Positions 24,053 to 64,000 of a stretch of DNA of 64,000 nucleotides are shown piece by piece. A model generated the notes under the pieces. The model had not been told where the DNA came from. It did not search any database and was given only the letters and a program-made list of their open reading frames with translations. A program made the translations under genes and the position numbers. Where the stretch lies: the NCBI GenBank assembly GCA_963924565.1, contig OZ004607.1:21762001-21826000 (forward strand), given 5' to 3'. Each line of letters begins with the position of its first letter. Position 1 is the stretch's first letter. This DNA comes from Ascidiella aspersa (lineage: Eukaryota).

Positions 24053-24253
24053 CTACATATATATAATTTCCCAAGGCAGTGGGTTGTCAGTAGATGTAAA
24101 TAAATCGGAAGATGGTGTTGACGTCGCTCCACCGCACGACTCGCAGGAACACGACTGTATATCAGGAATAGTAACAACAAAAGTATCTCGTCCGCAATGG
24201 ATTGGAATATCCCTTTTTTTATGCGAGACAGCCTGGCAACAACGGCAGTCATT
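24053..24253 (-). CDS. Terminal exon, CTCK second half plus short tail: NDCRCCQAVSHKKRDIPIHCGRDTFVVTIPDIQSCSCESCGGATSTPSSDLFTSTDNPLPWEIIYM*
   Basis: Acceptor tgttttacag|, phase 0. The CxCC...C...CxCxxC pattern completes an 11-Cys knot. TAG at 24053-24055. Confidence 0.92.
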   Translation of the reverse strand, partial: NDCRCCQAVSHKKRDIPIHCGRDTFVVTIPDIQSCSCESCGGATSTPSSDLFTSTDNPLPWEIIYM

Positions 24254-25267
24254 CTGTAAAACATAGCAAAATAGCCAATTGTTTTATGTTGGTTTATTGC
24301 ATTTTATAAAAAAAACATTTTTTGTGAAACATATTTTTAAATGTGTATGTGCTAGCAGCTATACAAACTAATCTAAAGTTTCCCTAAGTGCTTTGACTCT
24401 AGCCGGAGTGTCTTTTTATATATTACCACCTGGATTAAAAATTTATACAAACAACCGATGCGAACATAATCCATGTTATATTTGACAGCGCTTTTTCTGT
24501 AGGACATAATAAAGGTATCATATTTATAATTGTCGAGATTTGTAGGCAGCTGTTCGCGCCTCGCAACTAAAATCATAGAGGGGAAAAAGTCCTGTTTTAG
24601 ACCGATTTATCTCCGGAGCGTTATAGAAAAAGTGTACATCGTAGAATTTAAAAATTTTCAGACATGACGTAGAGTGGTATGTAGGTGCATATCATAGGTT
24701 TAGGAGTCTGCACCCATAGAGGCCTTCGATTGGAGGACAAACAACCTAAAATAGTGTGGCCTCATCGTTTGAGTCCTCTGTAGCTATCGACCCCTATCTA
24801 GCGGTAGAAAAACTCAATACACAATTCGTTCATATTCGCTTAGTTTGTCCAGCTCGCGAAGCAAGAGGCGACTAGCATTATGCTGAGCGCTTCATTCTCC
24901 CTGGGGAGATAAGCGGGACCTGCAATGCTCATCGTGCGAAATGTGTCCTGTTGGTAAAACAGCTTATTCCTCTTACAATATAACATGTTTTACGGCCGCA
25001 AATTTTAATGCAAAATCTGGTGGTAATGTAGACCTCTTTGTTAGCAACTATATTTCGCATGTTGTTCCTACTTAACATATAAACTAAATGTTGGTAAACC
25101 CCAGGGCTCTGTGAAAACCTTATTGTTGCTTTACGTAACGATCGTTATAGTCACAATTCGGTGGTAAACATATAATACTTGGTATGGGTTTTTAACGGAA
25201 ATCAATCGATCGGTAGCAATATCTCGTAAACAGGACTTGTTTCTCAGTTTCGTAGTAGTGTCTAGTG

Positions 25268-25712
25268 CAGGGGTGGGCAACTTCTCCAGTCGGCGGGCCT
25301 GCTATGATAAAAAAAATTAAGTACTTGACAGGCCGAATTTCTGGATCGATACATTAATCTTGTATTTATCTATCTATACAAGAAATAAAGCGTATTTTTG
25401 ATGTACTCCTTGTTAGATTGGCGACACTCTTTGACAACTTTACGGTTCTTGGCAAAATCCATGGGAAAATATTCATTGTAAATTATAAATCTAATTTTAA
25501 CCCAAAACAAAGAATCTAAAAACACAAAGAAAACAAAGAACTAAAGAATAACTAACAATCACTATTATTTGACATAGTAAGCAAGTAGTGGGGGATTGCG
25601 GCAGATTGTGGCCGCTCGCCACATTATCATGTAAGTTGTAATAGACCGGAAACTGTCTGCGGGCCGCTCAAAATCCGGGTCCGGCCCACGGGCCGTATGT
25701 TGCCCGCCCCTG
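25268..25712. mobile_element. hAT Charlie-type MITE in the mucin intron
   Basis: TIR CAGGGGTGGGCAAC / GTTGCCCGCCCCTG; perfect TSD GTCTAGTG. Confidence 0.92.
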
Positions 25713-27240: not shown

Positions 27241-27677
27241 TAGGGCGATTATTTTTTGACCTAAAAAACAGGAAATTTTGACCTAAATAATTAAAATTTT
27301 GACCAATTTTGACCTGAAAATAATTTATTTTGACAATTTTTGACCTGTTAGAAATGCATTGATTTAAATAACCTAGGCGTCGTTAATCACGCGTTTTTTA
27401 TACTGTATATTGCTCTAATAAAGATGTAATACGGTTAAAATGACTTTGAACATATATTAAAACTGATTTTTTTTTTTTATAAAATGAACGATAAATTTCA
27501 AAATAACTGAACGACCAATTTTAAAAAGCTGACTTCATTTTTTTTTCTATTTTTTAAGCGATTTATGTGCATTTTTGTTCGATTTTGGCTTGAAAAAATT
27601 TTGACAAATTTAGACCTAACGTGTAAATTTTGACACAATTTTGACTTTTTTTGACAAGTCAAAAAATAATCGCCCTA
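27241..27677. mobile_element. hAT MITE with TTTTGAC subterminal repeats
   Basis: 20-bp TIR TAGGGCGATTATTTTTTGAC; perfect TSD CTTATAAG. Confidence 0.92.
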
Positions 27678-28219: not shown

Positions 28220-31013
28220 AGATTGTGGTGACGCCATGGTTTTGTTATCTTCATTCACAGACGTACAACCCTGTTGGACCAGTGATGTATTTTGATTGCC
28301 GGTGGAAGGCATTCTAGAGTACTTTTCATGCATGTTCGCATGGAAAACACGATTTTTTCCAATCACATCCAGAACATAATTTCACTGTCCTCGTTTCTCC
28401 ACAACTGTGAATGGACATTTTCACTGGAGAAGAAACTTGTTGTGGTCAGTTGGTAGCAGCAGTAGCGCTTTTTTGTCGACTTCCATCCGTCGTGGTTTGG
28501 GTATCTCTGTTCATACCTCTTGTATCTCTCTCTTGAGCTCTTCTTTGGCCAGCGGTAGAGTCGTCTCAATATTTTTCCTTAGATCGATAACATACTAGTA
28601 GCTTGACCTCGCTTCCGTATCCGTGTGTGGGTTAGTCCACATTTCCTTTAGAATAGACATTGGTCCGCGAACCATCCTCCCGTAAAGTAGTTCGAAGGGT
28701 GAAAATCCCGTTGACTCTTGAGGAACTTCACGATATGCAAACAACAAAGCACAAATATGTTCCATTGTTTTGGTTGATCACAACACAGCCTTATGAGCAT
28801 TTTCTTTAGAGTCCCGTTAAATTTTTCTACCAGTCCGTTACACAAAGTGTGATAGGGACTTGTCATCAGATGCTTATTCATTAGAAGATGGTTCACTTCT
28901 TGCATACACTCCGAAACAAATTGAGTCCCTAAATCGCTTAACACTTCTTCAGGAATTCCTAATCGACTATACATGTCGACCAGTTCCTCTGCCACGGTTT
29001 CAGCTGTTATATTCTTTAGCGCTTTCGCCTCGGGGTATCGCGTTGGATAATCAACCAACGTAAGTATGTATCTGTGTTTGATTGTGTCCCTCTTCACTGG
29101 GAGGATGAATAGGGCCAATGAGATCCACAGCAATTCGTTTAAAAGGAACGTCGATTTGTGGCGCTGTATGCAGACGGACCCTCATCACACTGCCTTTGTC
29201 CACCGTCCTCTGACAAATGTCACCCGTCGACAAAATCGCTTTACGTCGTCACGCATGCCAGACCAAAAGAAGTTCCTTCAAATCTTGTCGAGTGTTGTTT
29301 TAATACCCATATGCCCGGCCATAATGGAATCATGACAACCTTAATAACGCTTTCTTTTAGCTTACTTGGCACAACAAGTTGTTTCATCCATTCTCCTCTG
29401 CTTTGTTTCGGGTGTTGAAACATCAGCAGTCCGTCTTCATTCACAAATGTGGTTACTTGTTCCCCCTGAACCAATACGTCCTCTGCCTCTTTTAGTTTAG
29501 AGATTGACGTTTTTTCTCTCTGTGCCCTTTCGAAACGGCCTTGTCCGTCACAGGCCATTCGTCCCATTTTGGTACCATCAGTAGTTTCTCTTTATCTTTC
29601 TTATGTCTCTTTTGGAAACGCGTTTGGACAGCGTTCGCTTATTCCTACAATAGATCGGGGTCTTCCTCTCCTCTAAAGCCTTGAATGTTTACGATGCACA
29701 CCTCATGCAAAGGATTGGGTAGACATAGAGTCTTTACCTTGCCTGTCCAATATGGTGTATATTGACCTTTATATTTACCACCTCGGCAGACACGACAGAG
29801 CCGTTGGCCAGCTTGAGGAGGCCTGGTCTGTCAATAATTTCGGTGCCTGTTCCTTTAAGTAAGTCGATAACACTTTAGGAGACGGCTTTAAAAATTGCTG
29901 TTTGACGAATAGCTCACTCACACCGCCCGAGACGAAAGTTGCGCCCGATAACTTCACCCACTTCAGCAGGTAATTCTGCAGACGCACCGCAAACTGGGAA
30001 GGCTCTTACCCTTTTCTGGTTTTCAACTCCAAAACTTAATGCGGTATCCTTCTTCGTTTAAATCGTAACGGTTAAGTAAAGCATGCTTAAGCCGATCATA
30101 ATCCACAGAGTCAGCGTCCGAAATTCTTAAGTATGCTCGACCTGTTAGAAGGGCGCTTAGCGTAGTCGCCCACTCTAACTTACCTCATTTGCAGGTTACA
30201 GCAAAGCGTTCGAAGCGTAGCAGATAGTTATCTAAGTCGTCCTTGCCATCGACAAACGTTGGCAGTTTAGGCGCTTTTGCCTTGCTTGTGACTGCTTTCT
30301 CGCGCTGACCAGCATTAACCTCTGAACGCCTACTGTTCAATAATGAGCTTTGCCAAATCGGCTCCAGTCAAACCCATTTGCTTGCCAACTTCAGCAATCT
30401 TTTTCATCTCGTTTTCTTACTTCACCACCAGATAAAACTAGGTCAACAGTCAACAAAATTCAACAGAATAAATCCCGGACGAGCTCCCAATTGTCGCAAA
30501 CCTTTAGGCCAGATATCCTAAAGTTTCTTTTCTGCAGTGTTGTAATGACTTAAGTCATTGACTTGACTTAAGTGCACTTAAGTCACTGTTTTCAAATGAC
30601 TTGACTTCACTTAAGTCCTTTGACCAAAATGACTTGACTTGACTTAAGTCTTTTGGACAAATGACTTGACTTGGACTTGCTCTCATAATGACTTGACTGG
30701 GACTTGACTTGGGCAACCGATGACTTGGACTGGGACTTGACCTGTTATTTTTGCAAAAGACTTGACTTGCACTGAAGTTATTTTTCAAATGACTTGACTT
30801 GGACTTAAGTTATTTCAAAATGACTTGTTTACAACACTGCTTTTCTGTGATGGCAAACCTAAAACCGGCACAGCAAAAACGGCAGATGTTTTCCTTAGTT
30901 AGCTTATGTAAAATCCTTCTCCACGTCTTGCCACAAATTCACATCAAAACAGCAGGTTATTTCAGGTCAACTGGTCGCACCATAAGATATCACAATAGGA
31001 ATATTACGTCACA
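28220..31013 (-). mobile_element. Degenerate Gmr1-like Gypsy relic (5' LTR, PBS, gag, protease remnant, integrase; RT missing)
   Basis: PBS TGGGAGCTCGTCCGGGAT (tRNA-Pro type, 30472-30489) next to LTR end at 30492. Gag KAPKLPTFVDGKDDLDNYLLRFERFA. Integrase (VDLIGP, LSDLGTQF, NGLVEKFNGTLK) follows the protease region directly. Outer limits approximate. Confidence 0.78.
30535..30839. mobile_element. hAT MITE built of GACTT pentamer arrays, inserted in the Gmr1-like LTR
   Basis: TIR CAGTGTTGTAA / TTACAACACTG; perfect TSD CTTTTCTG. Confidence 0.92.
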
Positions 31014-33483: not shown

Positions 33484-33883
33484 CAGTGTTCTTAAACAGG
33501 TGAATGGTTCACCCCAGGGTGAATAAAATGTTTGCAGGGGTGAGTAAGGGTGAACCGTCAGAAATTGATATACCTCTGCAGTAAATCGACTACTGAACTG
33601 TTGTTTTTGCTGATTGTAATAGTGAAGTTGGTTTGTACTGAGAGTATTAGTACAAACATTTGGTGACAGTGTTTTGTGCTTTTGTAGCTTTATATTTCTG
33701 AACTCGAGAAATTGTAGATTTGCAATGGTAACACTTAGCTTGAGTTAATCTTAACATAAATCGAAACAACCTAAGTCATTTTGTGCTAGACGAGATAGTT
33801 TTCATATCATGAGACAAGGGTGAATGAAATCTATAGATATATGCTAGGGGTAAACAAAACTAAAAAAAGTTTGAAAAGCACTG
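33484..33883. mobile_element. hAT MITE (GGGTGAA motifs)
   Basis: Ends CAGTGTTCTTAAAC / GTTTGAAAAGCACTG; perfect TSD ATTTAACA. Inserted in another MITE remnant starting near 33402. Confidence 0.92.
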
Positions 33884-34444: not shown

Positions 34445-34587
34445 CTTTAGAAACTGGTTATGATGCAGAAACAAAACTTGTGAGTGACAGGTTCCACTAC
34501 ATGAAGAAACTTCAGTTTTTTTGCTTATACATCCACTGACGTTGAATAGAACTGTTGCACTTTGCAGACCACAACTTTCAACAGTTT
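34445..34587 (-). CDS. Cystine-knot (CTCK) first half: (K)TVESCGLQSATVLFNVSGCISKKTEVSSCSGTCHSQVLFLHHNQFLK
   Basis: Acceptor atttaaag|, donor AAG|GTTAGT. 143 nt, phase 1 to 0. Contains the C-x-G-x-C knot motif. Confidence 0.9.
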
Positions 34588-34690: not shown

Positions 34691-34876
34691 TGCATTGTAC
34701 AGGGCAGCAATCATCGTCAGTGTGATATATGGGAGTTTGGTGTTTATCACAAACCACGTCACATTGCCTAGGCAAGCACGTAGTTCCCTGAACCGGATCT
34801 TCACAAGAGCAAAGTAGGCAGTTACCCTCTTCCCAAGTGGTTCCAACATTGTGAGTTGTCCCGTTGAATTTGCAAG
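34691..34876 (-). CDS. Mucin VWC domain exon: (A)CKFNGTTHNVGTTWEEGNCLLCSCEDPVQGTTCLPRQCDVVCDKHQTPIYHTDDDCCPVQC
   Basis: Acceptor ttattaattcag|, donor A|GTAAGG. 186 nt, phase 1 to 1. Matches the VWC pattern C..NG.....G..W....C..C.C...C....C...C...CCP..C. It is in a different frame from listed ORF 34667..34963. Confidence 0.92.
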
Positions 34877-38254: not shown

Positions 38255-38405
38255 CGTTTGGAACGCATTTGCAGCATTCGTCTGAGCTGGTTTCATTTAT
38301 AAGAGAAAATCCATCAGGACAAGCAGAAATGCTGCAAAACTTTTTGCAGGTTTCATTGTTGTTCGACAGGTTGCAGTAATAGCACTTGTTTTTAATGACC
38401 AGGTT
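38255..38405 (-). CDS. Mucin VWC-like exon: NLVIKNKCYYCNLSNNNETCKKFCSISACPDGFSLINETSSDECCKCVPN
   Basis: Acceptor ctaatttag|, donor G|GTAAGA. 151 nt, phase 0 to 1. The CxxC...C...CP.G...CCxC spacing is typical of mucin/VWF C-terminal modules. Confidence 0.88.
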
Positions 38406-38939: not shown

Positions 38940-39035
38940 CTTTACTGTGGTTGAATGAAAATAAGGAGTACTGTAGTATCTGCAACCAGTGCTTTTGGGA
39001 CAATTTTTTAACCCGTTATGTAAACAACTGACACG
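38940..39035 (-). CDS. Mucin Cys-linker exon: RVSCLHNGLKNCPKSTGCRYYSTPYFHSTTVK
   Basis: Acceptor tttggtttgcag|, donor AAG|GTGAAT. 96 nt, phase 0 to 0. The donor choice is less certain than for the other exons. Confidence 0.65.
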
Positions 39036-39135: not shown

Positions 39136-39233
39136 CGCTGAACACTCTTCGTAACACGCTTCACACTTCGACGATGGGGAAGTGGATATATTAGGTTTAG
39201 TTGTTGAAATAACAGAAAAAGTGGACACCACAG
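39136..39233 (-). CDS. Mucin exon after the PTS exon: (A)VVSTFSVISTTKPNISTSPSSKCEACYEECSA
   Basis: Acceptor ttcatctgcag|, donor |GTATGT. 98 nt, phase 1 to 0, compatible with the PTS exon. Marks the transition from S/T-rich to Cys-containing sequence. Confidence 0.82.
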
Positions 39234-39701
39234 CTGCAGATGAAACTTAGTTAAGCATAGAGTTGTTGACATTTTTAGAAAAATAACTAATAATAATTTC
39301 ATATTTACCACATGAAGAAACTCATGGCTTTGCGAAATAAGTTTCTAATGTAACTGCTATTTTAAACAATTAGGATCCGAATGCTAATTTTATCAAAGAA
39401 TTTAGTTAGATTTATAGTGTCTTCAGGACATTTTAATTGACAATATGGCAACACATTTTTTTGTTTAGTGAGAAAGAAATTTTTATAACATAAAAAAGTA
39501 TAGAACCATAAAAAATTACAGATATTTCAGTAAAAATCTCTCGAACTTTATAAAAATATTTGTCAACAGCCAAACGACTGAGTTAGACTGTCTTTAATAT
39601 TCTATGTTTAAAAAAAATAGATTTAAACATAATTTATTGTGTAACCGCCACAGGGGTGTGCTGTTAAACTGCCAGTATTTGAACTATGGGCTTAACCTCA
39701 C

Positions 39702-45700: not shown

Positions 45701-48700
45701 ATGGATTCAGTGGTTTCTGAAAAACTTGAAACAGTGCTGGGATTAGATTCTGTCGCACCCATCGAGGAACCGGTTAGCGATTGTGGTTTTGGCGCTATAC
45801 TTGATATTGAACTACCTGACGATATCGCGGTTTTAGGTGTGCTTAATAAAGTTCCACTTTTCAAAACCGTGGTTGAAGTAAAGCCCGACGTAGTACCTCC
45901 TTCAGATAGCGTTTCTCCAGGGGTCTTTGTAGCAGAATTGCCAATGGACACCGCCGATTCCGTACTACCCGACGAAGATACTTTTTCACTTTGTCCGATA
46001 TTTGTTATTTCGAATGTAGAAACACTTGAATATGGAGAAGTGCCGGTAACATTTGAATTAGAACTGCTAGATAATGACATGGTTTCCATGATACTTGACG
46101 AAAGTTCGGTTTTAGATTCTCCCGTTGGTGATAATTTTGATGTTGATATTACCGCAAATGGTGTGTTTTCAGTTGATAACACAGAGCTAAATATCGATTC
46201 AGTGGTTTCTGAAAAACTTGAAACAGTGCTGGGATTAGATTCTGTCTCACCCATCGGGGAACCGGTTTGTGATTGTGGTTTTGGCGCTATACTTGATATG
46301 GAACTACCTGACGATATCGCGGTTTTAGGGGTGCTTAATAAAGTTCCACTTTTCAAAACCGTGGTTGAAGTAAAGCCCGACGTAGTACCGCCTTCAGATA
46401 GCGTTTCTCCAGGGGTCTTTGTAGCAGAATTGCCAAATGAAACCGCCGATTCCGTACTACCCGACGAAGATATTTTTTCACTTTGTCCTATATTTGTTGT
46501 TTCGAAAGTAGAAACACTTGGATATGGAGAAGTGCCGGTAACATTTGAAATAGAACTGCTAGATAATGACATGGTTTCCATGATACTTGACGAAAGTTCG
46601 TTTTTAGATTCTCCCGTTGGTGATAATTTTGATGTTGAAATTACAGCAAGTGGTGTGTTTTCAGTTGATAACACAGAGCTAAATATCGATTCAGTGGTTT
46701 CTGAAAAACTTGAAACAGTGCTGGGATTAGATTCTGTCTCACCCATCGGGGAACCGGTTTGTGATTGTGGTTTTGGCGCTATACTTGATATGGAACTACC
46801 TGACGATATCGCGGTTTTAGGTGTTCTTAATAAAGATCCACTTTTCAAAACCGTGGTTGAAGTAAAGCCCGACGTAGTACCGCCTTCAGATAGCGTTTCT
46901 CCAGGGGTCTTTGTAGCAGAATTGCCAATGGACACCGCCGATTCCGTACTACCCGACGAAGATATTTTTTCACTTTGTCCGATATTTGTTATTTCGAATG
47001 TAGAAACACTTGGATATGGAGAATTGCCGGTAACATTTGAAATAGAACTGCTAGATAATGACATGGTTTCCATGATACTTGACGAAAGTTCGGTTTTAGA
47101 TTCTCCCGTTGGTGATAATTTTGATGTTGATATTGCCGCAAATGGTGTGTTTTCAGGTGATGACACAGAGCTAAATATCGATTCAGTGGTTTCTGAAAAA
47201 CTTGAAACAGTGCTGGGATTAGATTCTGTCTCACCCATCGGGGAACCGGTTTGTGATTGTGGTTTTAGCGCTATACTTGATATGGAACTACCTGACGATA
47301 TCGCGGTTTTAGGGGTGCTTAATAACGTTCCACTTTTCAAAACCGTGGTTGAAGTAAAGCCCGACGTAGTACCGCCTTCAGATAGCGTTTCTCCAGGGGT
47401 CTTTGTAGCAGAATTGCCAAATGAAACCGCCGATTCCGTACTACCCGACGAAGATATTTTTTCACTTTGTCCTATATTTGTTGTTTCGAAAGTAGAAACA
47501 CTTGGATATGGAGAAGTGCCGGTAACATTTGAAATAGAACTGCTAGATAATGACATGGTTTCCATGATACTTGACGAAAGTTCGGTTTTAGATTCTCCCG
47601 TTGGTGATAATTTTGATGTTGATATTGCCGCAAATGGTGTGTTTTCAGTTGATAAAACAGAGCTAAATATGGATTCAGTGGTTTCTGAAAAACTTGAAAC
47701 AGTGCTGGGATTAGATTCTGTCGCACCCATCGAGGAACCGGTTAGCGATTGTGGTTTTGGCGCTATACTTGATATTGAACTACCTGACGATATCGCGGTT
47801 TTAGGTGTGCTTAATAAAGTTCCACTTTTCAAAACCGTGGTTGAAGTAAAGCCCGACGTAGTACCTCCTTCAGATAGCGTTTCTCCAGGGGTCTTTGTAG
47901 CAGAATTGCCAATGGACACCGCCGATTCCGTACTACCCGACGAAGATATTTTTTCACTTTGTCCGATATTTGTTGTTTCGAAAGTAGAAACACTTGGATA
48001 TGGAGAAGTGCCACTAACATTTGAAATAGAACTGCTAGATAATGACATGGTTTCCATGATACTTGACGAAAGTTCGTTTTTAGATTCTCCCGTTGGTGAT
48101 AATTTTGATGTTAAAATTACAGCAAGTGGTGTGTTTTCAGTTGATAACACAGAGCTAAATATCGATTCAGTGGTTTCTGAAAAACTTGAAACAGTGTTGG
48201 GATTAAATTCTGTCGCACCCATCGGGGAACCGGTTAGTGATTGTGGTTTTGGCGCTATACTTGATATTGAACTACCTGACGATATCGCGGTTTTAGGTGT
48301 GCTTAATAAAGTTCCACTTTTCAAAACCGTGGTTGAAGTAAAGCCCGACGTAGTACCTCCTTCAGATAGCGTTTCTCCAGGGGTCTTTGTAGCAGAATTG
48401 AAAATTGAAACCGCCGATTCCGTACTACCCGACGAAGATATTTTTTCACTTTGTCCGATATTTGTTGTTTCGAAAGTAGAAACACTTGGATATGGAGAAG
48501 TGCCACTAACATTTGAAATAGAACTGCTAGATAATGACATGGTTTCCATGATACTTGACGAAAGTCCGTTTTTAGATTCTCCCGTTGGTGATAATTTTGA
48601 TGTTGAAATTACAGCAAGTGGTGTGTTTTCAGTTGATAACACAGAGCTAAATATCGATTCAGTGGTTTCTGAAAAACTTGAAACAGTGCTGGGATTAGAT

Positions 48701-51700
48701 TCTGTCGCACCCATCGGGGAACCGGTTAGTGATTGTGGTTTTGGCGCTATACTTGATATCGAAGTACCTGACGATATCGCGGTTTTAGGTGTGCTTAATA
48801 AAGATCCACTTTTCAAAACCGTGGTTGAAGTAAAGCCCGACGTGGTACCTCCTTCAGATAGCGTTTCTCCAGGGGTCTTTGTAGCAGAATTGCCAATGGA
48901 CACCGCCGATTCCGTACTACCCGACGAAGATATTTTTTCACTTTGTCCGATATTTGTTATTTCGACTGTAGAAACACTTGGATATGGAGAATTGCCGGTA
49001 ACATTTGAAATAGAACTGCTAGATAATGACATGGTTTCCATGATACTTGACGAAAGTTCGGTTTTAGATTCTCCCGTTGGTGATAATTTTGATGTTGATA
49101 TTGCCGCAAATGGTGTGTTTTCAGGTGATGACACAGAGCTAAATATCGATTCAGTGGTTTCTGAAAAACTTGAAACAGTGCTGGGATTAGATTCTGTCGC
49201 ACCCATCGGGGAACCGGTTTGTGATTGTGGTTTTGGCGCTATACTTGATATGGAACTACCTGACGATATCGCGGTTTTAGGGGTGCTTAATAAAGTTCCA
49301 CTTTTCAAAACCGTGGTTGAAGTAAAGCCCGACGTAGTACCGCCTTCAGATAGCGTTTCTCCAGGGGTCTTTGTAGCAGAATTGCCAAATGAAACCGCCG
49401 ATTCCGTACTACCCGACGAAGATATTTTTTCACTTTGTCCTATATTTGTTGTTTCGAAAGTAGAAACACTTGGATATGGAGAAGTGCCGGTAACATTTGA
49501 AATAGAACTGCTAGATAATGACATGGTTTCCATGATACTTGACGAAAGTTCGGTTTTAGATTCTCCCGTTGGTGATAATTTTGATGTTGATATTGCCGCA
49601 AATGGTGTGTTTTCAGTTGATAAAACAGAGCTAAATATGGATTCAGTGGTTTCTGAAAAACTTGAAACAGTGCTGGGATTAGATTCTGTCGCACCCATCG
49701 AGGAACCGGTTAGCGATTGTGGTTTTGGCGCTATACTTGATATTGAACTACCTGACGATATCGCGGTTTTAGGTGTGCTTAATAAAGTTCCACTTTTCAA
49801 AACCGTGGTTGAAGTAAAGCCCGACGTAGTACCTCCTTCAGATAGCGTTTCTCCAGGGGTCTTTGTAGCAGAATTGCCAATGGACACCGCCGATTCCGTA
49901 CTACCCGACGAAGATATTTTTTCACTTTGTCCGATATTTGTTGTTTCGAAAGTAGAAACACTTGGATATGGAGAAGTGCCACTAACATTTGAAATAGAAC
50001 TGCTAGATAATGACATGGTTTCCATGATACTTGACGAAAGTTCGTTTTTAGATTCTCCCGTTGGTGATAATTTTGATGTTAAAATTACAGCAAGTGGTGT
50101 GTTTTCAGTTGATAACACAGAGCTAAATATCGATTCAGTGGTTTCTGAAAAACTTGAAACAGTGTTGGGATTAAATTCTGTCGCACCCATCGGGGAACCG
50201 GTTAGTGATTGTGGTTTTGGCGCTATACTTGATATTGAACTACCTGACGATATCGCGGTTTTAGGTGTGCTTAATAAAGTTCCACTTTTCAAAACCGTGG
50301 TTGAAGTAAAGCCCGACGTAGTACCTCCTTCAGATAGCGTTTCTCCAGGGGTCTTTGTAGCAGAATTGAAAATTGAAACCGCCGATTCCGTACTACCCGA
50401 CGAAGATATTTTTTCACTTTGTCCGATATTTGTTGTTTCGAAAGTAGAAACACTTGGATATGGAGAAGTGCCACTAACATTTGAAATAGAACTGCTAGAT
50501 AATGACATGGTTTCCATGATACTTGACGAAAGTCCGTTTTTAGATTCTCCCGTTGGTGATAATTTTGATGTTGAAATTACAGCAAGTGGTGTGTTTTCAG
50601 TTGATAACACAGAGCTAAATATCGATTCAGTGGTTTCTGAAAAACTTGAAACAGTGCTGGGATTAGATTCTGTCGCACCCATCGGGGAACCGGTTAGTGA
50701 TTGTGGTTTTGGCGCTATACTTGATATCGAAGTACCTGACGATATCGCGGTTTTAGGTGTGCTTAATAAAGATCCACTTTTCAAAACCGTGGTTGAAGTA
50801 AAGCCCGACGTGGTACCTCCTTCAGATAGCGTTTCTCCAGGGGTCTTTGTAGCAGAATTGCCAATGGACACCGCCGATTCCGTACTACCCGACGAAGATA
50901 TTTTTTCACTTTGTCCGATATTTGTTATTTCGACTGTAGAAACACTTGGATATGGAGAATTGCCGGTAACATTTGAAATAGAACTGCTAGATAATGACAT
51001 GGTTTCCATGATACTTGACGAAAGTTCGGTTTTAGATTCTCCCGTTGGTGATAATTTTGATGTTGATATTGCCGCAAATGGTGTGTTTTCAGGTGATGAC
51101 ACAGAGCTAAATATCGATTCAGTGGTTTCTGAAAAACTTGAAACAGTGCTGGGATTAGATTCTGTCGCACCCATCGGGGAACCGGTTTGTGATTGTGGTT
51201 TTGGCGCTATACTTGATATGGAACTACCTGACGATATCGCGGTTTTAGGGGTGCTTAATAAAGTTCCACTTTTCAAAACCGTGGTTGAAGTAAAGCCCGA
51301 CGTAGTACCGCCTTCAGATAGCGTTTCTCCAGGGGTCTTTGTAGCAGAATTGCCAAATGAAACCGCCGATTCCGTACTACCCGACGAAGATATTTTTTCA
51401 CTTTGTCCGATATTTGTTGTTTCGAAAGTAGAAACACTTGGATATGGAGAAGTGCCGGTAACATTTGAAATAGAACTGCTAGATAATGACATGGTTTCCA
51501 TGATACTTGACGAAAGTTCGTTTTTAGATTCTCCCGTTGGTGATAATTTTGATGTTGAAATTACAGCAAATGGTGTGTTTTCAGTTGATAAAACAGAGCT
51601 AAATATCGATTCAGTGGTTTCTGAAAAACTTGAAACAGTGCTGGGATTAGATTCTGTCGCACCCATCGAGGAACCGGTTAGCGATTGTGGTTTTGGCACT

Positions 51701-54700
51701 ATACTTGATATTGAACTACCTGACGATATCGCGGTTTTAGGTGTGCTTAATAAAGTTCCACTTTTCAAAACCGTGGTTGAAGTAAAGCCCGACGTAGTAC
51801 CTCCTTCAGATAGCGTTTCTCCAGGGGTCTTTGTAGCAGAATTGCCAATGGACACCGCCGATTCCGTACTACCCGACGAAGATATTTTTTCACTTTGTCC
51901 GATATTTGTTATTTCGAATGTAGAAACACTTGAATATGGAGAAGTGCCGGTAACATTTGAATTAGAACTGCTAGATAATGACATGGTTTCCATGATACTT
52001 GACGAAAGTTCGGTTTTAGATTCTCCCGTTGGTGATAATTTTGATGTTGATATTACCGCAAATGGTGTGTTTTCAGGTGATGACACAGAGCTGAATATCG
52101 ATTCAGTGGTTTCTGAAAAACTTGAATTAGTGCTGGGATTAGATTCTGTCGCCCCCATCGGGGAACCGGTTTGTGATTGTGGTTTTGGCGCTATACTTGA
52201 TATTGAACTACCTGACGATATCGCGGTTTTAGGTGTGCTTAATAAAGTTCCACTTTTCAAAACCGTGGTTGAAGTAAAGCCCGACGTAGTACCTCCTTCA
52301 GATAGCGTTTCTCCAGTGGTCTTTGTAGCAGAATTGCCAATTGAAACCGCCGATTCCGTACTACCCGACGAAGATATTTTTTCACTTTGTCCGATATTTG
52401 TTGTTTCGAAAGTAGAAACACTTGGATATGGAGAAGTGCCACTAACATTTGAAATAGAACTGCTAGATAATGACATGGTTTCCATGATACTTGACGAAAG
52501 TCCGTTTTTAGATTCTCCCGTTGGTGATAATTTTGATGTTGAAATTACAGCAAGTGGTGTGTTTTCAGTTGATAACACAGAGCTAAATATCGATTCAGTG
52601 GTTTCTGAAAAACTTGAAACAGTGCTGGGATTAGATTCTGTCGCACCCATCGGGGAACCGGTTAGTGATTGTGGTTTTGGCGCTATACTTGATATTGAAC
52701 TACCTGACGATATCGCGGTTTTAGGTGGGCTTAATAAAGATCCACTTTTCAAAACCGTGGTTGAAGTAAAGCCCGACGTAGTACCTCCTTCAGATAGTGT
52801 TTCTCCAGGGGTCTTTGTAGCAGAATTGCCAATGGACACCGCCGATTCCGTACTACCCGACGAAGATATTTTTTCACTTTGTCCGATATTTGTTGTTTCG
52901 AAAGTAGAAACACTTGGATATGGAGAAGTGTCACTAACATTTGAAATAGAACTGCTAGATAATGACATGGTTTCCATGATACTTGACGAAAGTCCGTTTT
53001 TAGATTCTCCCGTTGGTGATAACTTTGATGTTGAAATTACAGCAAGTGGTGTGTTTTCAGTTGATAACACAGAGCTAAATATCGATTCAGTGGTTTCTGA
53101 AAAACTTGAAACAGTGCTGGGATTAGATTCTGTCGCACCCATCGGGGAACCGGTTAGTGATTGTGGTTTTGGCGCTATACTTGATATTGAACTACCTGAC
53201 GATATCGCGGTTTTAGGTGTGCTTAATAAAGATCCACTTTTCAAAACCGTGGTTGAAGTAAAGCCCAACGTGGTACCTCCTTCAGATAGCGTTTCTCCAG
53301 GGGTCTTTGTAGCAGAATTGCCAATGGACACCGCCGATTCCGTACTACCCGACGAAGATATTTTTTCACTTTGTCCGATATTTGTTGTTTCGAAAGTAGA
53401 AACACTTGGATATGGAGAATTGCCGGTAACATTTGAAATAGAACTGCTAGATAATGACATGGTTTCCATGATACTTGACGAAAGTTCGGTTTTAGATTCT
53501 CCCGTTGGTGATAATTTTGATGTTGATATTGCCGCAAATGGTGTGTTTTCAGGTGATGACACAGAGCTAAATATCGATTCAGTGGTTTCTGAAAAACTTG
53601 AAACAGTGCTGGGATTAGATTCTGTCTCACCCATCGGGGAACCGGTTTGTGATTGTGGTTTTGGCGCTATACTTGATATGGAACTACCTGACGATATCGC
53701 GGTTTTAGGGGTGCTTAATAAAGTTCCACTTTTCAAAACCGTGGTTGAAGTAAAGCCCGACGTAGTACCGCCTTCAGATAGCGTTTCTCCAGGTGTCTTT
53801 GTAGCAGAATTGCCAAATGAAACCGCCGATTCCGTACTACCCGACGAAGATATTTTTTCACTTTGTCCGATATTTGTTGTTTCGAAAGTAGAAACACTTG
53901 GATATGGAGAAGTGCCGGTAACATTTGAAATAGAACTGCTAGATAATGACATGGTTTCCACGATACTTGACGAAAGTTCGTTTTTAGATTCTCCCGTTGG
54001 TGATAATTTTGATGTTGAAATTACAGCAAATGGTGTGTTTTCAGTTGATAAAACAGAGCTAAATATGGATTCAGTGGTTTCTGAAAAACTTGAAACAGTG
54101 CTGGGATTAGATTCTGTCGCACCCATCGAGGAACCGGTTAGCGATTGTGGTTTTGGCGCTATACTTGATATTGAACTACCTGACGATATCGCGGTTTTAG
54201 GTGTGCTTAATAAAGTTCCACTTTTCAAAACCGTGGTTGAAGTAAAGCCCGACGTAGTACCTCCTTCAGATAGCGTTTCTCCAGGGGTCTTTGTAGCAGA
54301 ATTGCCAATGGACACCGCCGATTCCGTACTACCCGACGAAGATATTTTTTCACTTTGTCCGATATTTGTTATTTCGAATGTAGAAACACTTGAATATGGA
54401 GAAGTGCCGGTAACATTTGAATTAGAACTGCTAGATAATGACATGGTTTCCATGATACTTGACGAAAGTTCGGTTTTAGATTCTCCCGTTGGTGATAATT
54501 TTGATGTTGATATTACCGCAAATGGTGTGTTTTCAGGTGATGACACAGAGCTGAATATCGATTCAGTGGTTTCTGAAAAACTTGAAATAGTGCTGGGATT
54601 AGATTCTGTCGCCCCCATCGGGGAACCGGTTTGTGATTGTGGTTTTGGCGCTATACTTGATATTGAACTACCTGACGATATCGCGGTTTTAGGTGTGCTT

Positions 54701-57700
54701 AATAAAGTTCCACTTTTCAAAACCGTGGTTGAAGTAAAGCCCGACGTAGTACCTCCTTCAGATAGCGTTTCTCCAGTGGTCTTTGTAGCAGAATTGCCAA
54801 TTGAAACCGCCGATTCAGTACTACCCGACGAAGATATTTTTTCACTTTGTCCGATATTTGTTGTTTCGAAAGTAGAAACACTTGGATATGGAGAAGTGCC
54901 ACTAACATTTGAAATAGAACTGCTAGATAATGACATGGTTTCCATGATACTTGACGAAAGTCCGTTTTTAGATTCTCCCGTTGGTGATAATTTTGATGTT
55001 GAAATTACAGCAAGTGGTGTGTTTTCAGTTGATAACACAGAGCTAAATATCGATTCAGTGGTTTCTGAAAAACTTGAAACAGTGCTGGGATTAGATTCTG
55101 TCGCACCCATCGGGGAACCGGTTAGTGATTGTGGTTTTGGCGCTATACTTGATATTGAACTACCTGACGATATCGCGGTTTTAGGTGTGCTTAATAAAGA
55201 TCCACTTTTCAAAACCGTGGTTGAAGTAAAGCCCGACGTAGTACCTCCTTCAGATAGCGTTTCTCCAGGGGTCTTTGTAGCAGAATTGCCAATGGACACC
55301 GCCGATTCCGTACTACCCGACGAAGATATTTTTTCACTTTGTCCGATATTTGTTATTTCGAATGTAGAAACACTTGGATATGGAGAATTGCCGGTAACAT
55401 TTGAAATAGAACTGCTAGATAATGACATGGTTTCCATGATACTTGACGAAAGTTCGGTTTTAGATTCTCCCGTTGGTGATAATTTTGATGTTGATATTGC
55501 CGCAAATGGTGTGTTTTCAGGTGATGACACAGAGCTAAATATCGATTCAGTGGTTTCTGAAAAACTTGAAACAGTGCTGGGATTTGATTCTGTCTCACCC
55601 ATCGGGGAACCGGTTTGTGATTGTGGTTTTGGCGCTATACTTGATATGGAACTACCTGACGATATCGCGGTTTTAGGGGTGCTTAATAAAGTTCCACTTT
55701 TCAAAACCGTGGTTGAAGTAAAGCCCGACGTAGTACCGCCTTCAGATAGCGTTTCTCCAGGGGTCTTTGTAGCAGAATTGCCAAATGAAACCGCCGATTC
55801 CGTACTACCCGACGAAGATATTTTTTCACTTTGTCCGATATTTGTTGTTTCGAAAGTAGAAACACTTGGATATGGAGAAGTGCCGGTAACATTTGAAATA
55901 GAACTGCTAGATAATGACATGGTTTCCATGATACTTGACGAAAGTTCGTTTTTAGATTCTCCCGTTGGTGATAATTTTGATGTTGAAATTACAGCAAATG
56001 GTGTGTTTTCAGTTGATAACACAGAGCTAAATATGGATTCAGTGGTTTCTGAAAAACTTGAAACAGTGCTGGGATTAGATTCTGTCGCACCCATCGGGGA
56101 ACTGGTTAGTGATTGTGGTTTTGGCGCTATACTTGATATTGAACTACCTGACGATATCGCGGTTTTAGGTGTGCTTAATAAAGTTCCACTTTTCAAAACC
56201 GTGGTTGAAGTAAAGCCCGACGTAGTACCTCCTTCAGATAGCGTTTCTCCAGGGGTCTTTGTAGCAGAATTGCCAATGGACATCGCCGATTCCGTACTAC
56301 CCGACGAAGATATTTTTTCACTTTGTCCGATATTTGTTATTTCGAATGTAGAAACACTTGAATATGGAGAAGTGCCGGTAACATTTGAATTAGAACTGCT
56401 AGATAATGACATGGTTTCCATGATACTTGACGAAAGTTCGGTTTTAGATTCTCCCGTTGGTGATAATTTTGATGTTGATATTACCGCAAATGGTGTGTTT
56501 TCAGGTGATGACACAGAGCTGAATATCGATTCAGTGGTTTCTGAAAAACTTGAAACAGTGCTGGGATTAAATTCTGTCGCCCCCATCGGGGAACCGGTTT
56601 GTAATTGTGGTTTCGGCGCTATACTTGATATTGAACTACCTGACGATATCGCGGTTTTAGGTGTGCTTAATAAAGTTCCACTTTTTAAAACCGTGGTTGA
56701 AGTAAAGCCCGACGTAGTAACTCCTTCAGATAGCGTTTCTCCAGGGGTCTTTGTAGCAGAATTGCCAATTGAAACCGCCGATTCCGTACTACCCGACGAA
56801 GATATTTTTTCACTTTGTCCGATATTTGTTGTTTCGAAAGTAGAAACACTTGGATATGGAGAAGTGCCACTAACATTTGAAATAGAACTGCTAGATAATG
56901 ACATGGTTTCCATGATACTTGACGAAAGTCCGTTTTTAGATTCTCCCGTTGGTGATAACTTTGATGTTGAAATTACAGCAAGTGGTGTGTTTTCAGTTGA
57001 TAACACAGAGCTAAATATCGATTCAGTGGTTTCTGAAAAACTTGAAACAGTGCTGGGATTAGATTCTGTCGCACCCATCGGGGAACCGGTTAGTGATTGT
57101 GGTTTTGGCGCTATACTTGATATTGAACTACCTGACGATATCGCGGTTTTAGGTGTGCTTAATAAAGATCCACTTTTCAAAACCGTGGTTGAAGTAAAGC
57201 CCGACGTAGTACCTCCTTCAGATAGCGTTTCTCCAGGGGTCTTTGTAGCAGAATTGCCAATGGACACCGCCGATTCTGTACTACCCGACGAAGATATTTT
57301 TTCACTTTGTCCGATATTTGTTATTTCGAATGTAGAAACACTTGGATATGGAGAATTGCCGGTAACATTTGAAATAGAACTGCTAGATAATGACATGGTT
57401 TCCATGATACTTGACGAAAGTTCGGTTTTAGATTCTCCCGTTGGTGATAATTTTGATGTTGATATTGCGGCAAATGGTGTGTTTTCAGGTGATGACACAG
57501 AGCTAAATATCGATTCAGTGGTTTCTGAAAAACTTGAAACAGTGCTGGGATTAGATTCTGTCTCACCCATCGGGGAACCGGTTTGTGATTGTGGTTTTGG
57601 CGCTATACTTGATATGGAACTACCTGACGATATCGCGGTTTTAGGGGTGCTTAATAAAGTTCCACTTTTCAAAACCGTGGTTGAAGTAAAGCCCGACGTA

Positions 57701-60700
57701 GTACCGCCTTCAGATAGCGTTTCTCCAGGGGTCTTTGTAGCAGAATTGCCAAATGAAACCGCCGATTCCGTACTACCCGACGAAGATATTTTTTCACTTT
57801 GTCCGATATTTGTTGTTTCGAAAGTAGAAACACTTGGATATGGAGAAGTGCCGGTAACATTTGAAATAGAACTGCTAGATAATGACATGGTTTCCATGAT
57901 ACTTGACGAAAGTTCGTTTTTAGATTCTCCCGTTGGTGATAATTTTGATGTTGAAATTACAGCAAATGGTGTGTTTTCAGTTGATAACACAGAGCTAAAT
58001 ATGGATTCAGTGGTTTCTGAAAAACTTGAAACAGTGCTGGGATTAGATTCTGTCGCACCCATCGGGGAACTGGTTAGTGATTGTGGTTTTGGCGCTATAC
58101 TTGATATTGAACTACCTGACGATATCGCGGTTTTAGGTGTGCTTAATAAAGTTCCACTTTTCAAAACCGTGGTTGAAGTAAAGCCCGACGTAGTACCTCC
58201 TTCAGATAGCGTTTCTCCAGGGGTCTTTGTAGCAGAATTGCCAATGGACATCGCCGATTCCGTACTACCCGACGAAGATATTTTTTCACTTTGTCCGATA
58301 TTTGTTATTTCGAATGTAGAAACACTTGAATATGGAGAAGTGCCGGTAACATTTGAATTAGAACTGCTAGATAATGACATGGTTTCCATGATACTTGACG
58401 AAAGTTCGGTTTTAGATTCTCCCGTTGGTGATAATTTTGATGTTGATATTACCGCAAATGGTGTGTTTTCAGGTGATGACACAGAGCTGAATATCGATTC
58501 AGTGGTTTCTGAAAAACTTGAAACAGTGCTGGGATTAAATTCTGTCGCCCCCATCGGGGAACCGGTTTGTAATTGTGGTTTCGGCGCTATACTTGATATT
58601 GAACTACCTGACGATATCGCGGTTTTAGGTGTGCTTAATAAAGTTCCACTTTTCAAAACCGTGGTTGAAGTAAAGCCCGACGTAGTAACTCCTTCAGATA
58701 GCGTTTCTCCAGGGGTCTTTGTAGCAGAATTGCCAATTGAAACCGCCGATTCCGTACTACCCGACGAAGATATTTTTTCACTTTGTCCGATATTTGTTGT
58801 TTCGAAAGTAGAAACACTTGGATATGGAGAAGTGCCACTAACATTTGAAATAGAACTGCTAGATATTAACATGGTTTCCATGATACTTGACGAAAGTCCG
58901 TTTTTAGATTCTCCCGTTGGTGATAATTTTGATGTTGAAATTACAGCAAGTGGTGTGTTTTCAGTTGATAACACAGAGCTAAATATCGATTCAGTGGTTT
59001 CTGAAAAACTTGAAACAGTGCTGGGATTAGATTCTGTCGCACCCATCGGGGAACCGGTTAGTGATTGTGGTTTTGGCGCTATACTTGATATTGAACTACC
59101 TGACGATATCGCGGTTTTAGGTGTGCTTAATAAAGATCCAGTTTTCAAAACCGTGGTTGAAGTAAAGCCCGACGTAGTACCTCCTTCAGATAGCGTTTCT
59201 CCAGGGGTCTTTGTAGCAGAATTGCCAATGGACACCGCCGATTCCGTACTACCCGACGAAGATATTTTTTCACTTTGTCCGATATTTGTTATTTCGAATG
59301 TAGAAACACTTGAATATGGAGAAGTGCCGGTAACATTTGAATTAGAACTGCTAGATAATGACATGGTTTCCATGATACTTGACGAAAGTTCGGTTTTAGA
59401 TTCTCCCGTTGGTGATAATTTTGATGTTGAAATTACAGCAAGTGGTGTGTTTTCAGTTGATAACACAGAGCTAAATATCGATTCAGTGGTTTCTGAAAAA
59501 CTTGAAACAGTGCTGGGATTAGATTCTGTCGCACCCATCGGGGAACCGGTTAGTGATTGTGGTTTTGGCGCTATACTTGATATTGAAGTACCTGACGATA
59601 TCGCGGTTTTAGGTGTGCTTAATAAAGATCCACTTTTCAAAACCGTGGTTGAAGTAAAGCCCGACGTGGTACCTCCTTCAGATAGCGTTTCTCCAGGGGT
59701 CTTTGTAGCAGAATTGCCAATGGACACCGCCGATTCCGTACTACCCGACGAAGATATTTTTTCACTTTGTCCGATATTTGTTATTTCGAATGTAGAAACA
59801 CTTGGATATGGAGAATTGCCGGTAACATTTGAAATAGAACTGCTAGATAATGACATGGTTTCCATGATACTTGACGAAAGTTCGGTTTTAGATTCTCCCG
59901 TTGGTGATAATTTTGATGTTGATATTGCCACAAATGGTGTGTTTTCAGGTGATGACACGGAGCTAAATATCGATTCAGTGGTTTCTGAAAAACTTGAAAC
60001 AGTGCTGGGATTAGATTCTGTCTCACCCATCGGGGAACCGGTTTGTGATTGTGGTTTTGGCGCTATACTTGATATGGAACTACCTGACGATATCGCGGTT
60101 TTAGGGGTGCTTAATAAAGTTCCACTTTTCAAAACCGTGGTTGAAGTAAAGCCCGACGTAGTACCGCCTTCAGATAGCGTTTCTCCAGGGGTCTTTGTAG
60201 CAGAATTGCCAAATGAAACCGCCGATTCCGTACTACCCGACGAAGATATTTTTTTACTTTGTCCGATATTTGTTGTTTCGAAAGTAGAAACACTTGGATA
60301 TGGAGAAGTGCCGGTAACATTTGAAATAGAACTGCTAGATAATGACATGGTTTCCATGATACTTGACGAAAGTTCGTTTTTAGATTCTCCCGTTGGTGAT
60401 AATTTTGATGTTGAAATTACAGCAAATGGTGTGTTTTCAGTTGATAAAACAGAGCTAAATATGGATTCAGTGGTTTCTGAAAAACTTGAAACAGTGCTGG
60501 GATTAGATTCTGTCGCACCCATCGAGGAACCGGTTAGCGATTGTGGTTTTGGCGCTATACTTGATATTGAACTACCTGACGATATCGCGGTTTTAGGTGT
60601 GCTTAATAAAGTTCCACTTTTCAAAACCGTGGTTGAAGTAAAGCCCGACGTAGTACCTCCTTCAGATAGCGTTTCTCCAGGGGTCTTTGTAGCAGAATTG

Positions 60701-63700
60701 CCAATGGACACCGCCGATTCCGTACTACCCGACGAAGATATTTTTTCACTTTGTCCGATATTTGTTATTTCGAATGTAGAAACACTTGAATATGGAGAAG
60801 TGCCGGTAACATTTGAATTAGAACTGCTAGATAATGACATGGTTTCCATGATACTTGACGAAAGTTCGGTTTTAGATTCTCCCGTTGGTGATAATTTTGA
60901 TGTTGATATTACCGCAAATGGTGTGTTTTCAGGTGATGACACAGAGCTGAATATCGATTCAGTGGTTTCGGAAAAACTTGAAATAGTGCTGGGATTAGAT
61001 TCTGTCGCCCCCATCGGGGAACCGGTTTGTGATTGTGGTTTTGGCGCTATACTTGATATTGAACTACCTGACGATAACGCGGTTTTAGGTGTGCTTAATA
61101 AAGTTCCACTTTTCAAAACCGTGGTTGAAGTAAAGCCCGACGAAGTACCTCCTTCAGATAGCGTTTCTCCAGTGGTCTTTGTAGCAGAATTGCCAATTGA
61201 AACCGCCGATTCCGTACTACCCGACGAAGATATTTTTTCACTTTGTCGGATATTTGTTGTTTCGAAAGTAGAAACACTTGGATATGGAGAAGTGCCACTA
61301 ACATTTGAAATAGAACTGCTAGATAATGACATGGTTTCCATGATACTTGACGAAAGTCCGTTTTTAGATTCTCCCGTTGGTGATAATTTTGATGTTGAAA
61401 TTACAGCAAGTGGTGTGTTTTCAGTTGATAACACAGAGCTAAATATCGATTCAGTGGTTTCTGAAAAACTTGAAACAGTGCTGGGATTAGATTCTGTCGC
61501 ACCCATCGGGGAACCGGTTAGTGATTGTGGTTTTGGCGCTATACTTGATATTGAACTACCTGACGATATCGCGGTTTTAGGTGTGCTTAATAAAGATCCA
61601 CTTTTCAAAACCGTGGTTGAAGTAAAGCCCGACGTAGTACCTCCTTCAGATAGCGTTTCTCCAGGGGTCTTTGTAGCAGAATTGCCAATGGACACCGCCG
61701 ATTCCGTACTACCCGACGAAGATATTTTTTCACTTTGTCCGATATTTGTTGTTTCGAAAGTAGAAACACTTGGATATGGAGAAGTGCCACTAACATTTGA
61801 AATAGAACTGCTAGATAATGACATGGTTTCCATGATACTTGACGAAAGTCCGTTTTTAGATTCTCCCGTTGGTGATAATTTTGATGTTGAAATTACAGCA
61901 AGTGGTGTGTTTTCAGTTGATAACACAGAGCTAAATATCGATTCAGTGGTTTCTGAAAAACTTGAAACAGTGCTGGGATTAGATTCTGTCGCACCCATCG
62001 GGGAACCGGTTAGTGATTGTGGTTTTGGCGCTATACTTGATATTGAACTACCTGACGATATCGCGGTTTTAGGTGTGCTTAATAAAGATCCACTTTTCAA
62101 AACCGTGGTTGAAGTAAAGCCCGACGTAGTACCTCCTTCAGATAGCGTTTCTCCAGGGGTCTTTGTAGCAGAATTGCCAATGGACACCGCCGATTCCGTA
62201 CTACCCGACGAAGATATTTTTTCACTTTGTCCGATATTTGTTATTTCGAATGTAGAAACACTTGGATATGGAGAATTGCCGGTAACATTTGAAATAGAAC
62301 TGCTAGATAATGACATGGTTTCCATGATACTTGACGAAAGTTCGGTTTTAGATTCTCCCGTTGGTGATAATTTTGATGTTGATATTGCGGCAAATGGTGT
62401 GTTTTCAGGTGATGACACAGAGCTAAATATCGATTCAGTGGTTTCTGAAAAACTTGAAACATTGCTGGGATTAGATTCTGTCTCACCCATCGGGGAACCG
62501 GTTTGTGATTGTGGTTTTGGCGCTATACTTGATATGGAACTACCTGACGATATCGCGGTTTTAGGGGTGCTTAATAAAGTTCCACTTTTCAAAACCGTGG
62601 TTGAAGTAAAGCCCGACGTAGTACCGCCTTCAGATAGCGTTTCTCCAGGGGTTTTTGTAGCAGAATTGCCAAATGAAACCGCCGATTCCGTACTACCCGA
62701 CGAAGATATTTTTTCACTTTGTCCGATATTTGTTGTTTCGAAAGTAGAAACACTTGGATATGGAGAAGTGCCGGTAACATTTGAAATAGAACTGCTAGAT
62801 AATGACATGGTTTCCATGATACTTGACGAAAGTTCGTTTTTAGATTCTCCCGTTGGTGATAATTTTGATGTTGAAATTACAGCAAATGGTGTGTTTTCAG
62901 TTGATAACACAGAGCTAAATATGGATTCAGTGGTTTCTGAAAAACTTGAAACAGTGCTGGGATTAGATTCTGTCGCACCCATCGGGGAACTGGTTAGTGA
63001 TTGTGGTTTTGGCGCTATACTTGATATTGAACTACCTGACGATATCGCGGTTTTAGGTGTGCTTAATAAAGTTCCACTTTTCAAAACCGTGGTTGAAGTA
63101 AAGCCCGACGTAGTACCTCCTTCAGATAGCGTTTCTCCAGGGGTCTTTGTAGCAGAATTGCCAATTGAAACCGCCGATTCCGTACTACCCGACGAAGATA
63201 TTTTTTCACTTTGTCCGTTATTTGTTATTTCGAATGTAGAAACACTTGGATATGGAGAAGTGCCGGTAACATTTGAAATAGAACTGCTCGATAATGACAT
63301 GGTTTCCATGATACTTGACGGAAGTTCGGTTTTAGATTCTCCCGTTGGTGATAATTTTGATGTTGATATTACCGCAAATGGTGTGTTTTCAGGTGATGAC
63401 ACAGAGCTAAATATCGATTCAGTGGTTTCTGAAAAACTTGAAACAGTGCTGGGATTAGATTCTGACGCACCCATCGGGGAACCGGTTTGTGATTGTGGTT
63501 TTGGCGCTATACTTGATATGGAACTACCTGACGATATCGCGGTTTTAGGGGTGCTTGATAAAGTTCCACTTTTCAAAACCGTGGTTGAAGTAAAGCCCGA
63601 CGTAGTACCTCCTTCAGATAGCGTTTCTCCAGGGGTCTTTGTAGCAGAATTGCCAATTGAAACCGCCGATTCCGTACTACCCGACGAAGATATTTTTTCA

Positions 63701-64000
63701 CTTTGTCCGATATTTGTTGTTTCGAAAGTAGAAACACTTGGATATGGAGAAGTGCCGGAAACATTTGAAATAGAACTGATAGATAATGACATGGTTTCCA
63801 TGATACTTGACGAAAGTTCGTTTTTAGATTCTCCCGTTGGTGATAATTTTGAAGTTGAAATTACAGCAAATGGTGTGTTTTCAGTTGATAACACAGAGCT
63901 AAATATGGATTCAGTGGTTTCTGAAAAACTTGAAACAGTGCTGGGATTAGATTCTGTCGCACCCATCGAGGAACCGGTTAGCGATTGTGGTTTTGGCGCT
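39702..64000 (-). CDS. Giant PTS (Ser/Thr-rich) exon of a gel-forming-mucin-like gene; 5' end outside the window
   Basis: Stop-free ORF of 8100 aa, Cys-free, about 45% Ser+Thr (46 S and 27 T counted in one 164-aa unit). Splice donor TCTCCTG|GTGAGG at 39702/39701 (phase 1) lies just before the ORF stop at 39664. Confidence 0.93.
39900..64000 (-). repeat. Coding tandem repeat, 492-bp (164-aa) unit; 48 full copies from 63966 down to about 40351, plus a degenerate terminal copy
   Basis: The MG(A/E)TESNP unit start recurs every 492 bp. The last unit (IGVTESNPSS...) is diverged and contains a small insertion. Confidence 0.97.

Follow-up and report, generated by a model that had tools for sequence, protein, structure and literature searches.

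A probable giant gel-forming mucin gene with a 42.7-kb tandem-repeat exon in the ascidian Ascidiella aspersa

Structure of the locus

The analysed window encompasses 64,000 nucleotides (G000:C1:21762001-21826000) of the 308.6-Mb genome of the ascidian Ascidiella aspersa. Positions 24053-64000 of its minus strand very probably constitute the 3' two-thirds of one gel-forming mucin gene, the remainder of which lies upstream of base 64000 (positions in this upstream DNA are given below as window-equivalent coordinates). The assembled DNA itself shows how the exons are arranged, which domains they encode, and that the frame is intact (Table 1). From 5' to 3', the predicted layout of the complete gene is D1, D2, D'D3, two small Ser/Thr-rich exons, a giant PTS (mucin-domain) exon, a Cys-rich linker, a VWC domain, and a cystine knot (CTCK), and it is because of this combination of D1-D2-D'D3, PTS, VWC, and CTCK that the gene is assigned to the gel-forming mucins. 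The product would have a size of about 15,800 amino acids (aa), composed of roughly 1,250-1,350 aa for the N-terminal part, which is an estimate, followed by 44, 14,219, and 291 aa.

Table 1. Features of the predicted mucin gene within the window. A slash marks an exon-intron border.
Feature	Position	Strand	Evidence and remarks
Giant PTS (mucin-domain) exon, in-window part	39702..64000	-	Open frame, composition
492-bp (164-aa) tandem repeat array	39911..64000	-	TRF: 49 copies, 95% matches, 0% indels
Giant-exon splice donor	39700..39702	-	CCTG/GTGAGG; last exon base G 39702, GT 39701-39700, phase 1
Intron-1 in-frame stop, read only if intron 1 is retained	39664..39666	-	Sequence
Exon 2 (98 nt), Ser/Thr-rich end, then 3 Cys	39136..39233	-	AG/GT borders, phase 1 to 0
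Exon 3 (96 nt), 3 Cys, Cys-rich linker	38940..39035	-	AG/GT borders, phase 0 to 0
Exon 4 (151 nt), 8 Cys, terminal CC-x-C	38255..38405	-	AG/GT borders, phase 0 to 1
Exon 5 (186 nt), 10 Cys, one complete VWC	34691..34876	-	Borders and Pfam, symmetrical phase 1-1
Exon 6 (143 nt), 4 Cys, N-terminal cystine-knot half	34445..34587	-	Borders and Pfam
Exon 7 (201 nt), 7 Cys, C-terminal cystine-knot half, short Ser/Thr tail, TAG	24053..24253	-	Sequence and Pfam
AATAAA polyadenylation-type hexamer	24043..24048	-	5 nt past the stop codon, read from sequence
Retroelement integrase remnant in the 10.2-kb last intron	28648..29133	-	Pfam rve, E 5e-7

The giant exon and its tandem array

The open reading frame (ORF) listing of the window contains an ORF of 8,100 aa (39664..63966, minus strand), whose translation consists of 28.6% Ser and 15.8% Thr (S + T 44%) and has no Cys. 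The frame is unbroken at the window end, base 64000, and the upstream DNA extends it to 14,246-14,247 codons. An acceptor (ATATGCAG/GT) is located at window-equivalent position 82358, and the full exon extends from there (G000:C1:21844358) to 39702, comprising 42,657 bp or about 14,219 codons, of which approximately 8,100 fall inside the window; it is entered and left in phase 1. The gene is thus larger than given in the sequence-only reading, which had postulated a giant protein of more than 8,300 aa. The extended open frame has 28.6% Ser, 15.8% Thr, and 6.1% Pro, 89 N-x-S/T sites, and one Cys, which is situated upstream of the acceptor at 82358. The giant exon itself is without Cys, and no CysD domains were found within the PTS. 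An S + T content of 44.4%, a Pro content of 6.1%, and the organization in 85 units of 164 aa place the exon above the thresholds by which PTS domains have been delimited (S + T at least 40%, Pro above 5%; PMC4948705).

The tandem array was followed through the window and the upstream DNA and consists of 85 full 164-aa units. In a genome search with one unit, all 87 matches fell on this single locus, to which the repeat is confined. The units show 97.8% nucleotide identity to their consensus and no indels across 42.7 kb, and it is in the last unit that divergence from the others is greatest (94.5% identity, compared to a mean of approximately 96-97% between units). The 142 distinct variants in the array comprise 51 synonymous and 91 non-synonymous changes and not one stop codon, an outcome with P = 5e-4 under random substitution. 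By a crude estimate, the ratio of non-synonymous to synonymous changes (N/S) is approximately 0.66 times that expected under neutrality, which points to no more than weak constraint. Runs of 100% identical units recur at lags of four units (1,968 bp) and six units (2,952 bp), which indicates either recent multi-unit duplications or an effect of the assembly.

These last two observations could also be taken to mean that the gene was recently expanded and is unexpressed or decaying, or that the length of the array is artefactual, so that its size would be biologically meaningless: the identical runs may be real block duplications or mis-assembly, and the constraint on the units is weak only. This explanation is hardly probable, however, considering that 42.7 kb are free of stops and frameshifts despite so many distinct variants, that the flanking domain exons are intact, and that the PTS sequences of mucins are, as a rule, weakly constrained.

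The splice donor and the six downstream exons

The sequence-only reading had noted a splice donor just before the stop codon of the 8,100-aa ORF and six GT-AG exons beyond it that join in matching phases, and both of these claims held. The donor splits a codon after its first base and is followed by the in-frame stop of intron 1 after 36 nt. All exon borders are present, and the phase chain from the giant exon to exon 7 (1, 0, 0, 1, 1, 0) is intact and leads, without an internal stop, to the TAG at 24055-24053. The acceptors of exons 2-7 are CAG, CAG, TAG, CAG, AAG, and CAG, respectively, and the donors of exons 2-6 are GTATGT, GTGAAT, GTAAGA, GTAAGG, and GTTAGT. Together, exons 2-7 contribute 291 residues. 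Their G + C content ranges from 37 to 47%, compared to 24-29% in the three short introns.

An alternative explanation holds that the donor at 39702 is unused or used only occasionally, in which case the mucin would end at 39666-39664 without a knot, and the Cys-rich exons would belong to another transcript or be relics. The short distance between donor and stop is in line with this explanation, as are an AATAAA hexamer in intron 1, approximately 30 nt past the stop (within the 39625-39666 region, minus strand), and a Met-initiated short ORF that starts at 39302 in the same intron. Several findings nevertheless make it very unlikely. Exon 2 carries on the Ser/Thr-rich sequence of the giant exon and all phases fit; a protein with D1-D3 and PTS lacking a C-terminal dimerization domain would be atypical; and exons 2-6 could not open a separate protein because they do not contain a single Met. 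The ORF in intron 1 (39302-39100, minus strand), which has a hydrophobic, signal peptide-like start and abuts the exon 2 acceptor, was considered as a possible beginning of an independent Cys-rich product and rejected, as it never enters the Cys-rich frame; it probably is a chance product of AT-rich sequence. Splicing from the giant exon into exon 2 is retained as the preferred reading, in addition to which retention of intron 1 combined with early polyadenylation could possibly yield a mucin isoform without VWC and CTCK.

The introns also contain sequence of apparently mobile origin. The size of the 10.2-kb last intron is partly due to the non-coding integrase remnant listed in Table 1. Short repeats with 81-86% identity (31695-31785 and 36534-36624; 10940-11095 and 33604-33759) are dispersed over introns 4 and 6 and the region downstream of the gene, and probably represent small mobile elements.

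Domains of the C-terminus

For the exons downstream of the PTS, all Pfam, PDB, and Atlas scores refer to single exons that were searched separately. Exon 5 matched the VWC profile over its entire length (positions 1-57 of 57, E 8.2e-6); its only match in the PDB was to fibronectin type I (E 0.025). Exon 6 corresponds to positions 2-42 and exon 7 to positions 50-94 of the 105 positions of the Cys_knot profile (E 0.006 and E 0.01, respectively), and the seven residues at the junction of both exons equal in number the seven profile positions left unmatched. The two exons provide four and seven Cys, respectively, and hence the 11 Cys of an 11-Cys cystine knot. Exon 7 additionally aligned with the C-terminal half of Norrin (E 0.08), and exon 6 matched nothing in the PDB.

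The C-terminus had been read from sequence as a Cys linker, a VWC-like module, a VWC domain, and an 11-Cys CTCK. The latter two are supported by the Pfam matches; the VWC-like module in exons 3-4, whose sole basis is the terminal CC-x-C motif of exon 4, similar to the end of a VWC, found no statistical support, and a second VWC domain is not supported here. A D4 assembly is likewise absent, as neither a VWD match nor an additional Cys-rich open segment was detected between 39702 and 24053.

The division of the knot over two exons recurs elsewhere in the genome. In a genome-wide Cys_knot scan most other matches begin at profile position 46-51, and an intron in the same loop of the knot thus appears to be usual in this genome. 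Contig C4 carries a paralogue, likewise a VWD gene (G000:C4:10279106-10280777; L015), whose tail consists of a VWC and a CTCK interrupted by a 1.4-kb intron in this same loop, and its VWC-like, exon 6-like (36% identity, E 4e-6), and exon 7-like (31% identity, E 7e-4) pieces occur in the order and orientation seen in the mucin gene. When the paralogue is spliced at its own GT/AG sites, the spacing from C-x-S to C-x-C-C is 14 residues, as in the mucin model.

N-terminal assemblies upstream of the window

The N-terminus had been expected outside the window, with VWD-C8-TIL exons as the anticipated content, and this proved correct. On the same strand, VWD, C8, and TIL matches at window-equivalent positions 87.7k-115.1k form three VWD-C8-TIL assemblies, which correspond to D1, D2, and D'D3. 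The exon at the start of D3 aligns with MUC5AC 858-940, MUC5B 852-937, VWF 850-924, and MUC2 822-902, and the best alignment of the D2 exon carrying C8 and TIL is to VWF 592-694. D3 appears to be linked to the PTS exon via phase-compatible small exons: the last TIL/E exon (phase 2) is followed by a 64-nt exon, the junction creating a Cys codon within a C-x-T-C-x-C motif, and a 70-nt Ser/Thr-rich exon comes next and enters the giant exon in phase 1.

The first VWD1 exon contains no Met and requires an upstream exon that ends in phase 1. The exon that opens VWD1 (L011:5762-6109, minus strand, outside the window) starts with an EGF-like pattern of Cys that matches Pfam EGF weakly (E 5e-4 to 0.03); to our knowledge, no EGF-like stretch precedes D1 in the gel-forming mucins of vertebrates. 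Several N-terminal introns contain copies of a conceptual peptide starting with SDGPGLTGG (L011:6297-6943, L010:964-1065), which probably marks a dispersed repeat family.

Assessment of the gene model

A number of results weigh against the assignment to the gel-forming mucins or against details of the model. The two halves of the knot, taken singly, reach 17.4 and 16.6 bits and remain below the Pfam cut-off of 24, and the VWC match of exon 5 (26.5 bits) is 1 bit short of its cut-off of 27.6. Exon 7 alone, compared with 1.84 billion representatives, retrieved no mucin; its four matches to bacterial repeat proteins were spurious. Searches of public proteins, which bear only indirectly on the expectation in the sequence-only reading that automated annotation would likely fragment the gene, gave no match to the PTS tail among candidates of 4,455-14,175 aa and 1,375-4,375 aa, and none to exon 6 (searched within its 160-aa open frame) among candidates of 88-280 aa. 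At the 5' end, a heuristic search of the 13 kb upstream of VWD1 yielded no convincing signal-peptide exon, the candidates being rejected for want of a usable donor. The last intron is long (10.2 kb) and begins with a weaker donor, GTTAGT, and the length of the array is that assembled from near-identical units. Finally, exons 2-4 matched no Pfam family, and exon 4 had no usable match in the ESM Atlas.

The last of these results bears on the possibility that the gene is right overall, with at least one border in exons 2-4 being wrong or a small exon having been missed. Neither family nor Atlas matches lend homology support to these three exons, and the C4 paralogue showed no significant match to them either. 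On the other hand, they have canonical splice sites and are separated by AT-rich introns of 100-534 nt, their chosen frames are free of stops where at least one other frame of each exon has stops, and VWC and CTCK are in frame only through the phases of exons 2-4. A missed exon was searched for and rejected, because introns 1-6, including the 3.4-kb and the 10.2-kb intron, contain no further Cys-rich open segment. An error of this kind is considered unlikely. The least certain elements of the model are the exact borders of exons 2-4, the real length of the array, and the expression of the gene.

Neighbouring elements

Just downstream of the mucin gene lies a retroelement of the long terminal repeat type (17525-21660, minus strand), whose four broken ORFs together encode a gag-like DUF7041 domain, an aspartyl protease, a reverse transcriptase, an RNase H, and an integrase. 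Direct repeats of 84 nt with 98% identity flank the element at 17525 and 21577. Just past the upper direct repeat, an Rfam tRNA match was obtained on the plus strand (21914-21985, 33 bits, E 0.003), which could be either a tRNA gene or a tRNA-derived repeat. Transposon debris is present at 13-1581 and 4231-5566 (both plus strand), with zf-CCHC and RVT_1 ORFs at the start of the window and an ORF with a hAT dimerization domain at 4733-5566.

Comparison with known mucins

Among vertebrate proteins, MUC19 and MUC6 share with the Ascidiella gene the D1-D2-D'D3 assemblies, one very large repetitive PTS exon, and a short Cys-rich C-terminus with a cystine knot, and like it they possess neither CysD domains nor a VWD in the stretch from PTS to CTCK; the likeness is one of layout. 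It is due to the lack of D4 and CysD that the layout is regarded as being of the MUC6/MUC19 type and not of the MUC2/MUC5 type. Differences to MUC19 and MUC6 exist in the PTS (approximately 14,200 aa in 164-aa units), which exceeds the reference forms of both, and perhaps in the weakly matching EGF-like stretch that may precede VWD1.

MUC2, MUC5AC, MUC5B, and VWF resemble the gene in their D2 and D3 exons, which align position for position, and in a C-terminal VWC with an 11-Cys CTCK, and disulfide polymerization is presumed to be alike. In contrast to these four proteins, the Ascidiella gene lacks D4 and CysD and contains, by profile, a single VWC instead of several, and unlike VWF it has no VWA domains.

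Invertebrate mucin-like proteins were previously found not to be assignable to any vertebrate family, and 17 multi-VWD proteins, some of them with PTS domains, were reported from Ciona (PMC4948705). One tunicate member of the same superfamily is Ci-GFM1 of Ciona, which has D1-D3, VWC, and CK in common with the gene described here. Ci-GFM1 comprises 2,880 aa with a PTS of roughly 50 aa (PMC6109156) and carries D4 and two VWC domains, whereas the Ascidiella gene has no D4 and a PTS of about 14,200 aa.

An exon of 42.7 kb is large, but it is not unprecedented. For human MUC12, alleles coding for up to 23,080 aa in one exon have been predicted (PMC13345508), and the variable number tandem repeat of this gene, like the array in Ascidiella, is one uninterrupted tandem-repeat coding exon of tens of kilobases. 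MUC12 is membrane-tethered and has an unrelated domain architecture, and the parallel is thus restricted to exon size.

Proposed assembly and significance

The mechanism proposed for the Ascidiella protein is drawn from the biology of VWF and MUC2/MUC5B; splicing in vivo, secretion, glycosylation, and polymerization, as well as the tissue of expression, are what we infer from the gene model. The CTCK mediates tail-to-tail disulfide dimerization in VWF and gel-forming mucins, and the cystine knot of the predicted protein would produce disulfide-linked tail-to-tail dimers in the endoplasmic reticulum. In the Golgi, the roughly 6,300 Ser and Thr residues encoded by the repeat exon would be densely O-glycosylated, turning the PTS into a stiff, micrometre-long bottle-brush. 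Extended mucin domains measure approximately 0.25 nm per residue, at which a single PTS would span a few micrometres. Assembly via D3 would join the dimers head-to-head into linear polymers, and these would swell into mucus upon secretion.

Possible roles of such a polymer are in the mucus net of the endostyle, in gut mucus, or in surface mucus; the sequence-only reading had also suggested that it may act as an adhesive or in a matrix. A more specific proposal, which must be regarded as speculative and rather doubtful, is that this giant mucin without D4 and CysD may serve as the chief structural polymer in the pharyngeal feeding net that is secreted by the ascidian endostyle, with the length of the PTS rod, several micrometres per monomer, setting filament or mesh dimensions, or that it may represent a pre-vertebrate lineage of the MUC19/MUC6 type.

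The genes of gel-forming mucins pose difficulties for both assembly and annotation, and in the tunicate members reported to date, Ci-GFM1 among them, the PTS is tiny. The architecture of the Ascidiella gene and its presumed mechanism of assembly are textbook and alter no concept; the gene is notable mainly for its size. With a 42.7-kb open repeat exon and intact D1-D3 and VWC-CTCK regions, the locus offers a complete gene model of a putative bottle-brush mucin from the sister group of the vertebrates, which may serve the annotation of tunicate genomes, the question of which polymers build the feeding net and gut mucus, and the study of the evolution of D4-less mucins.

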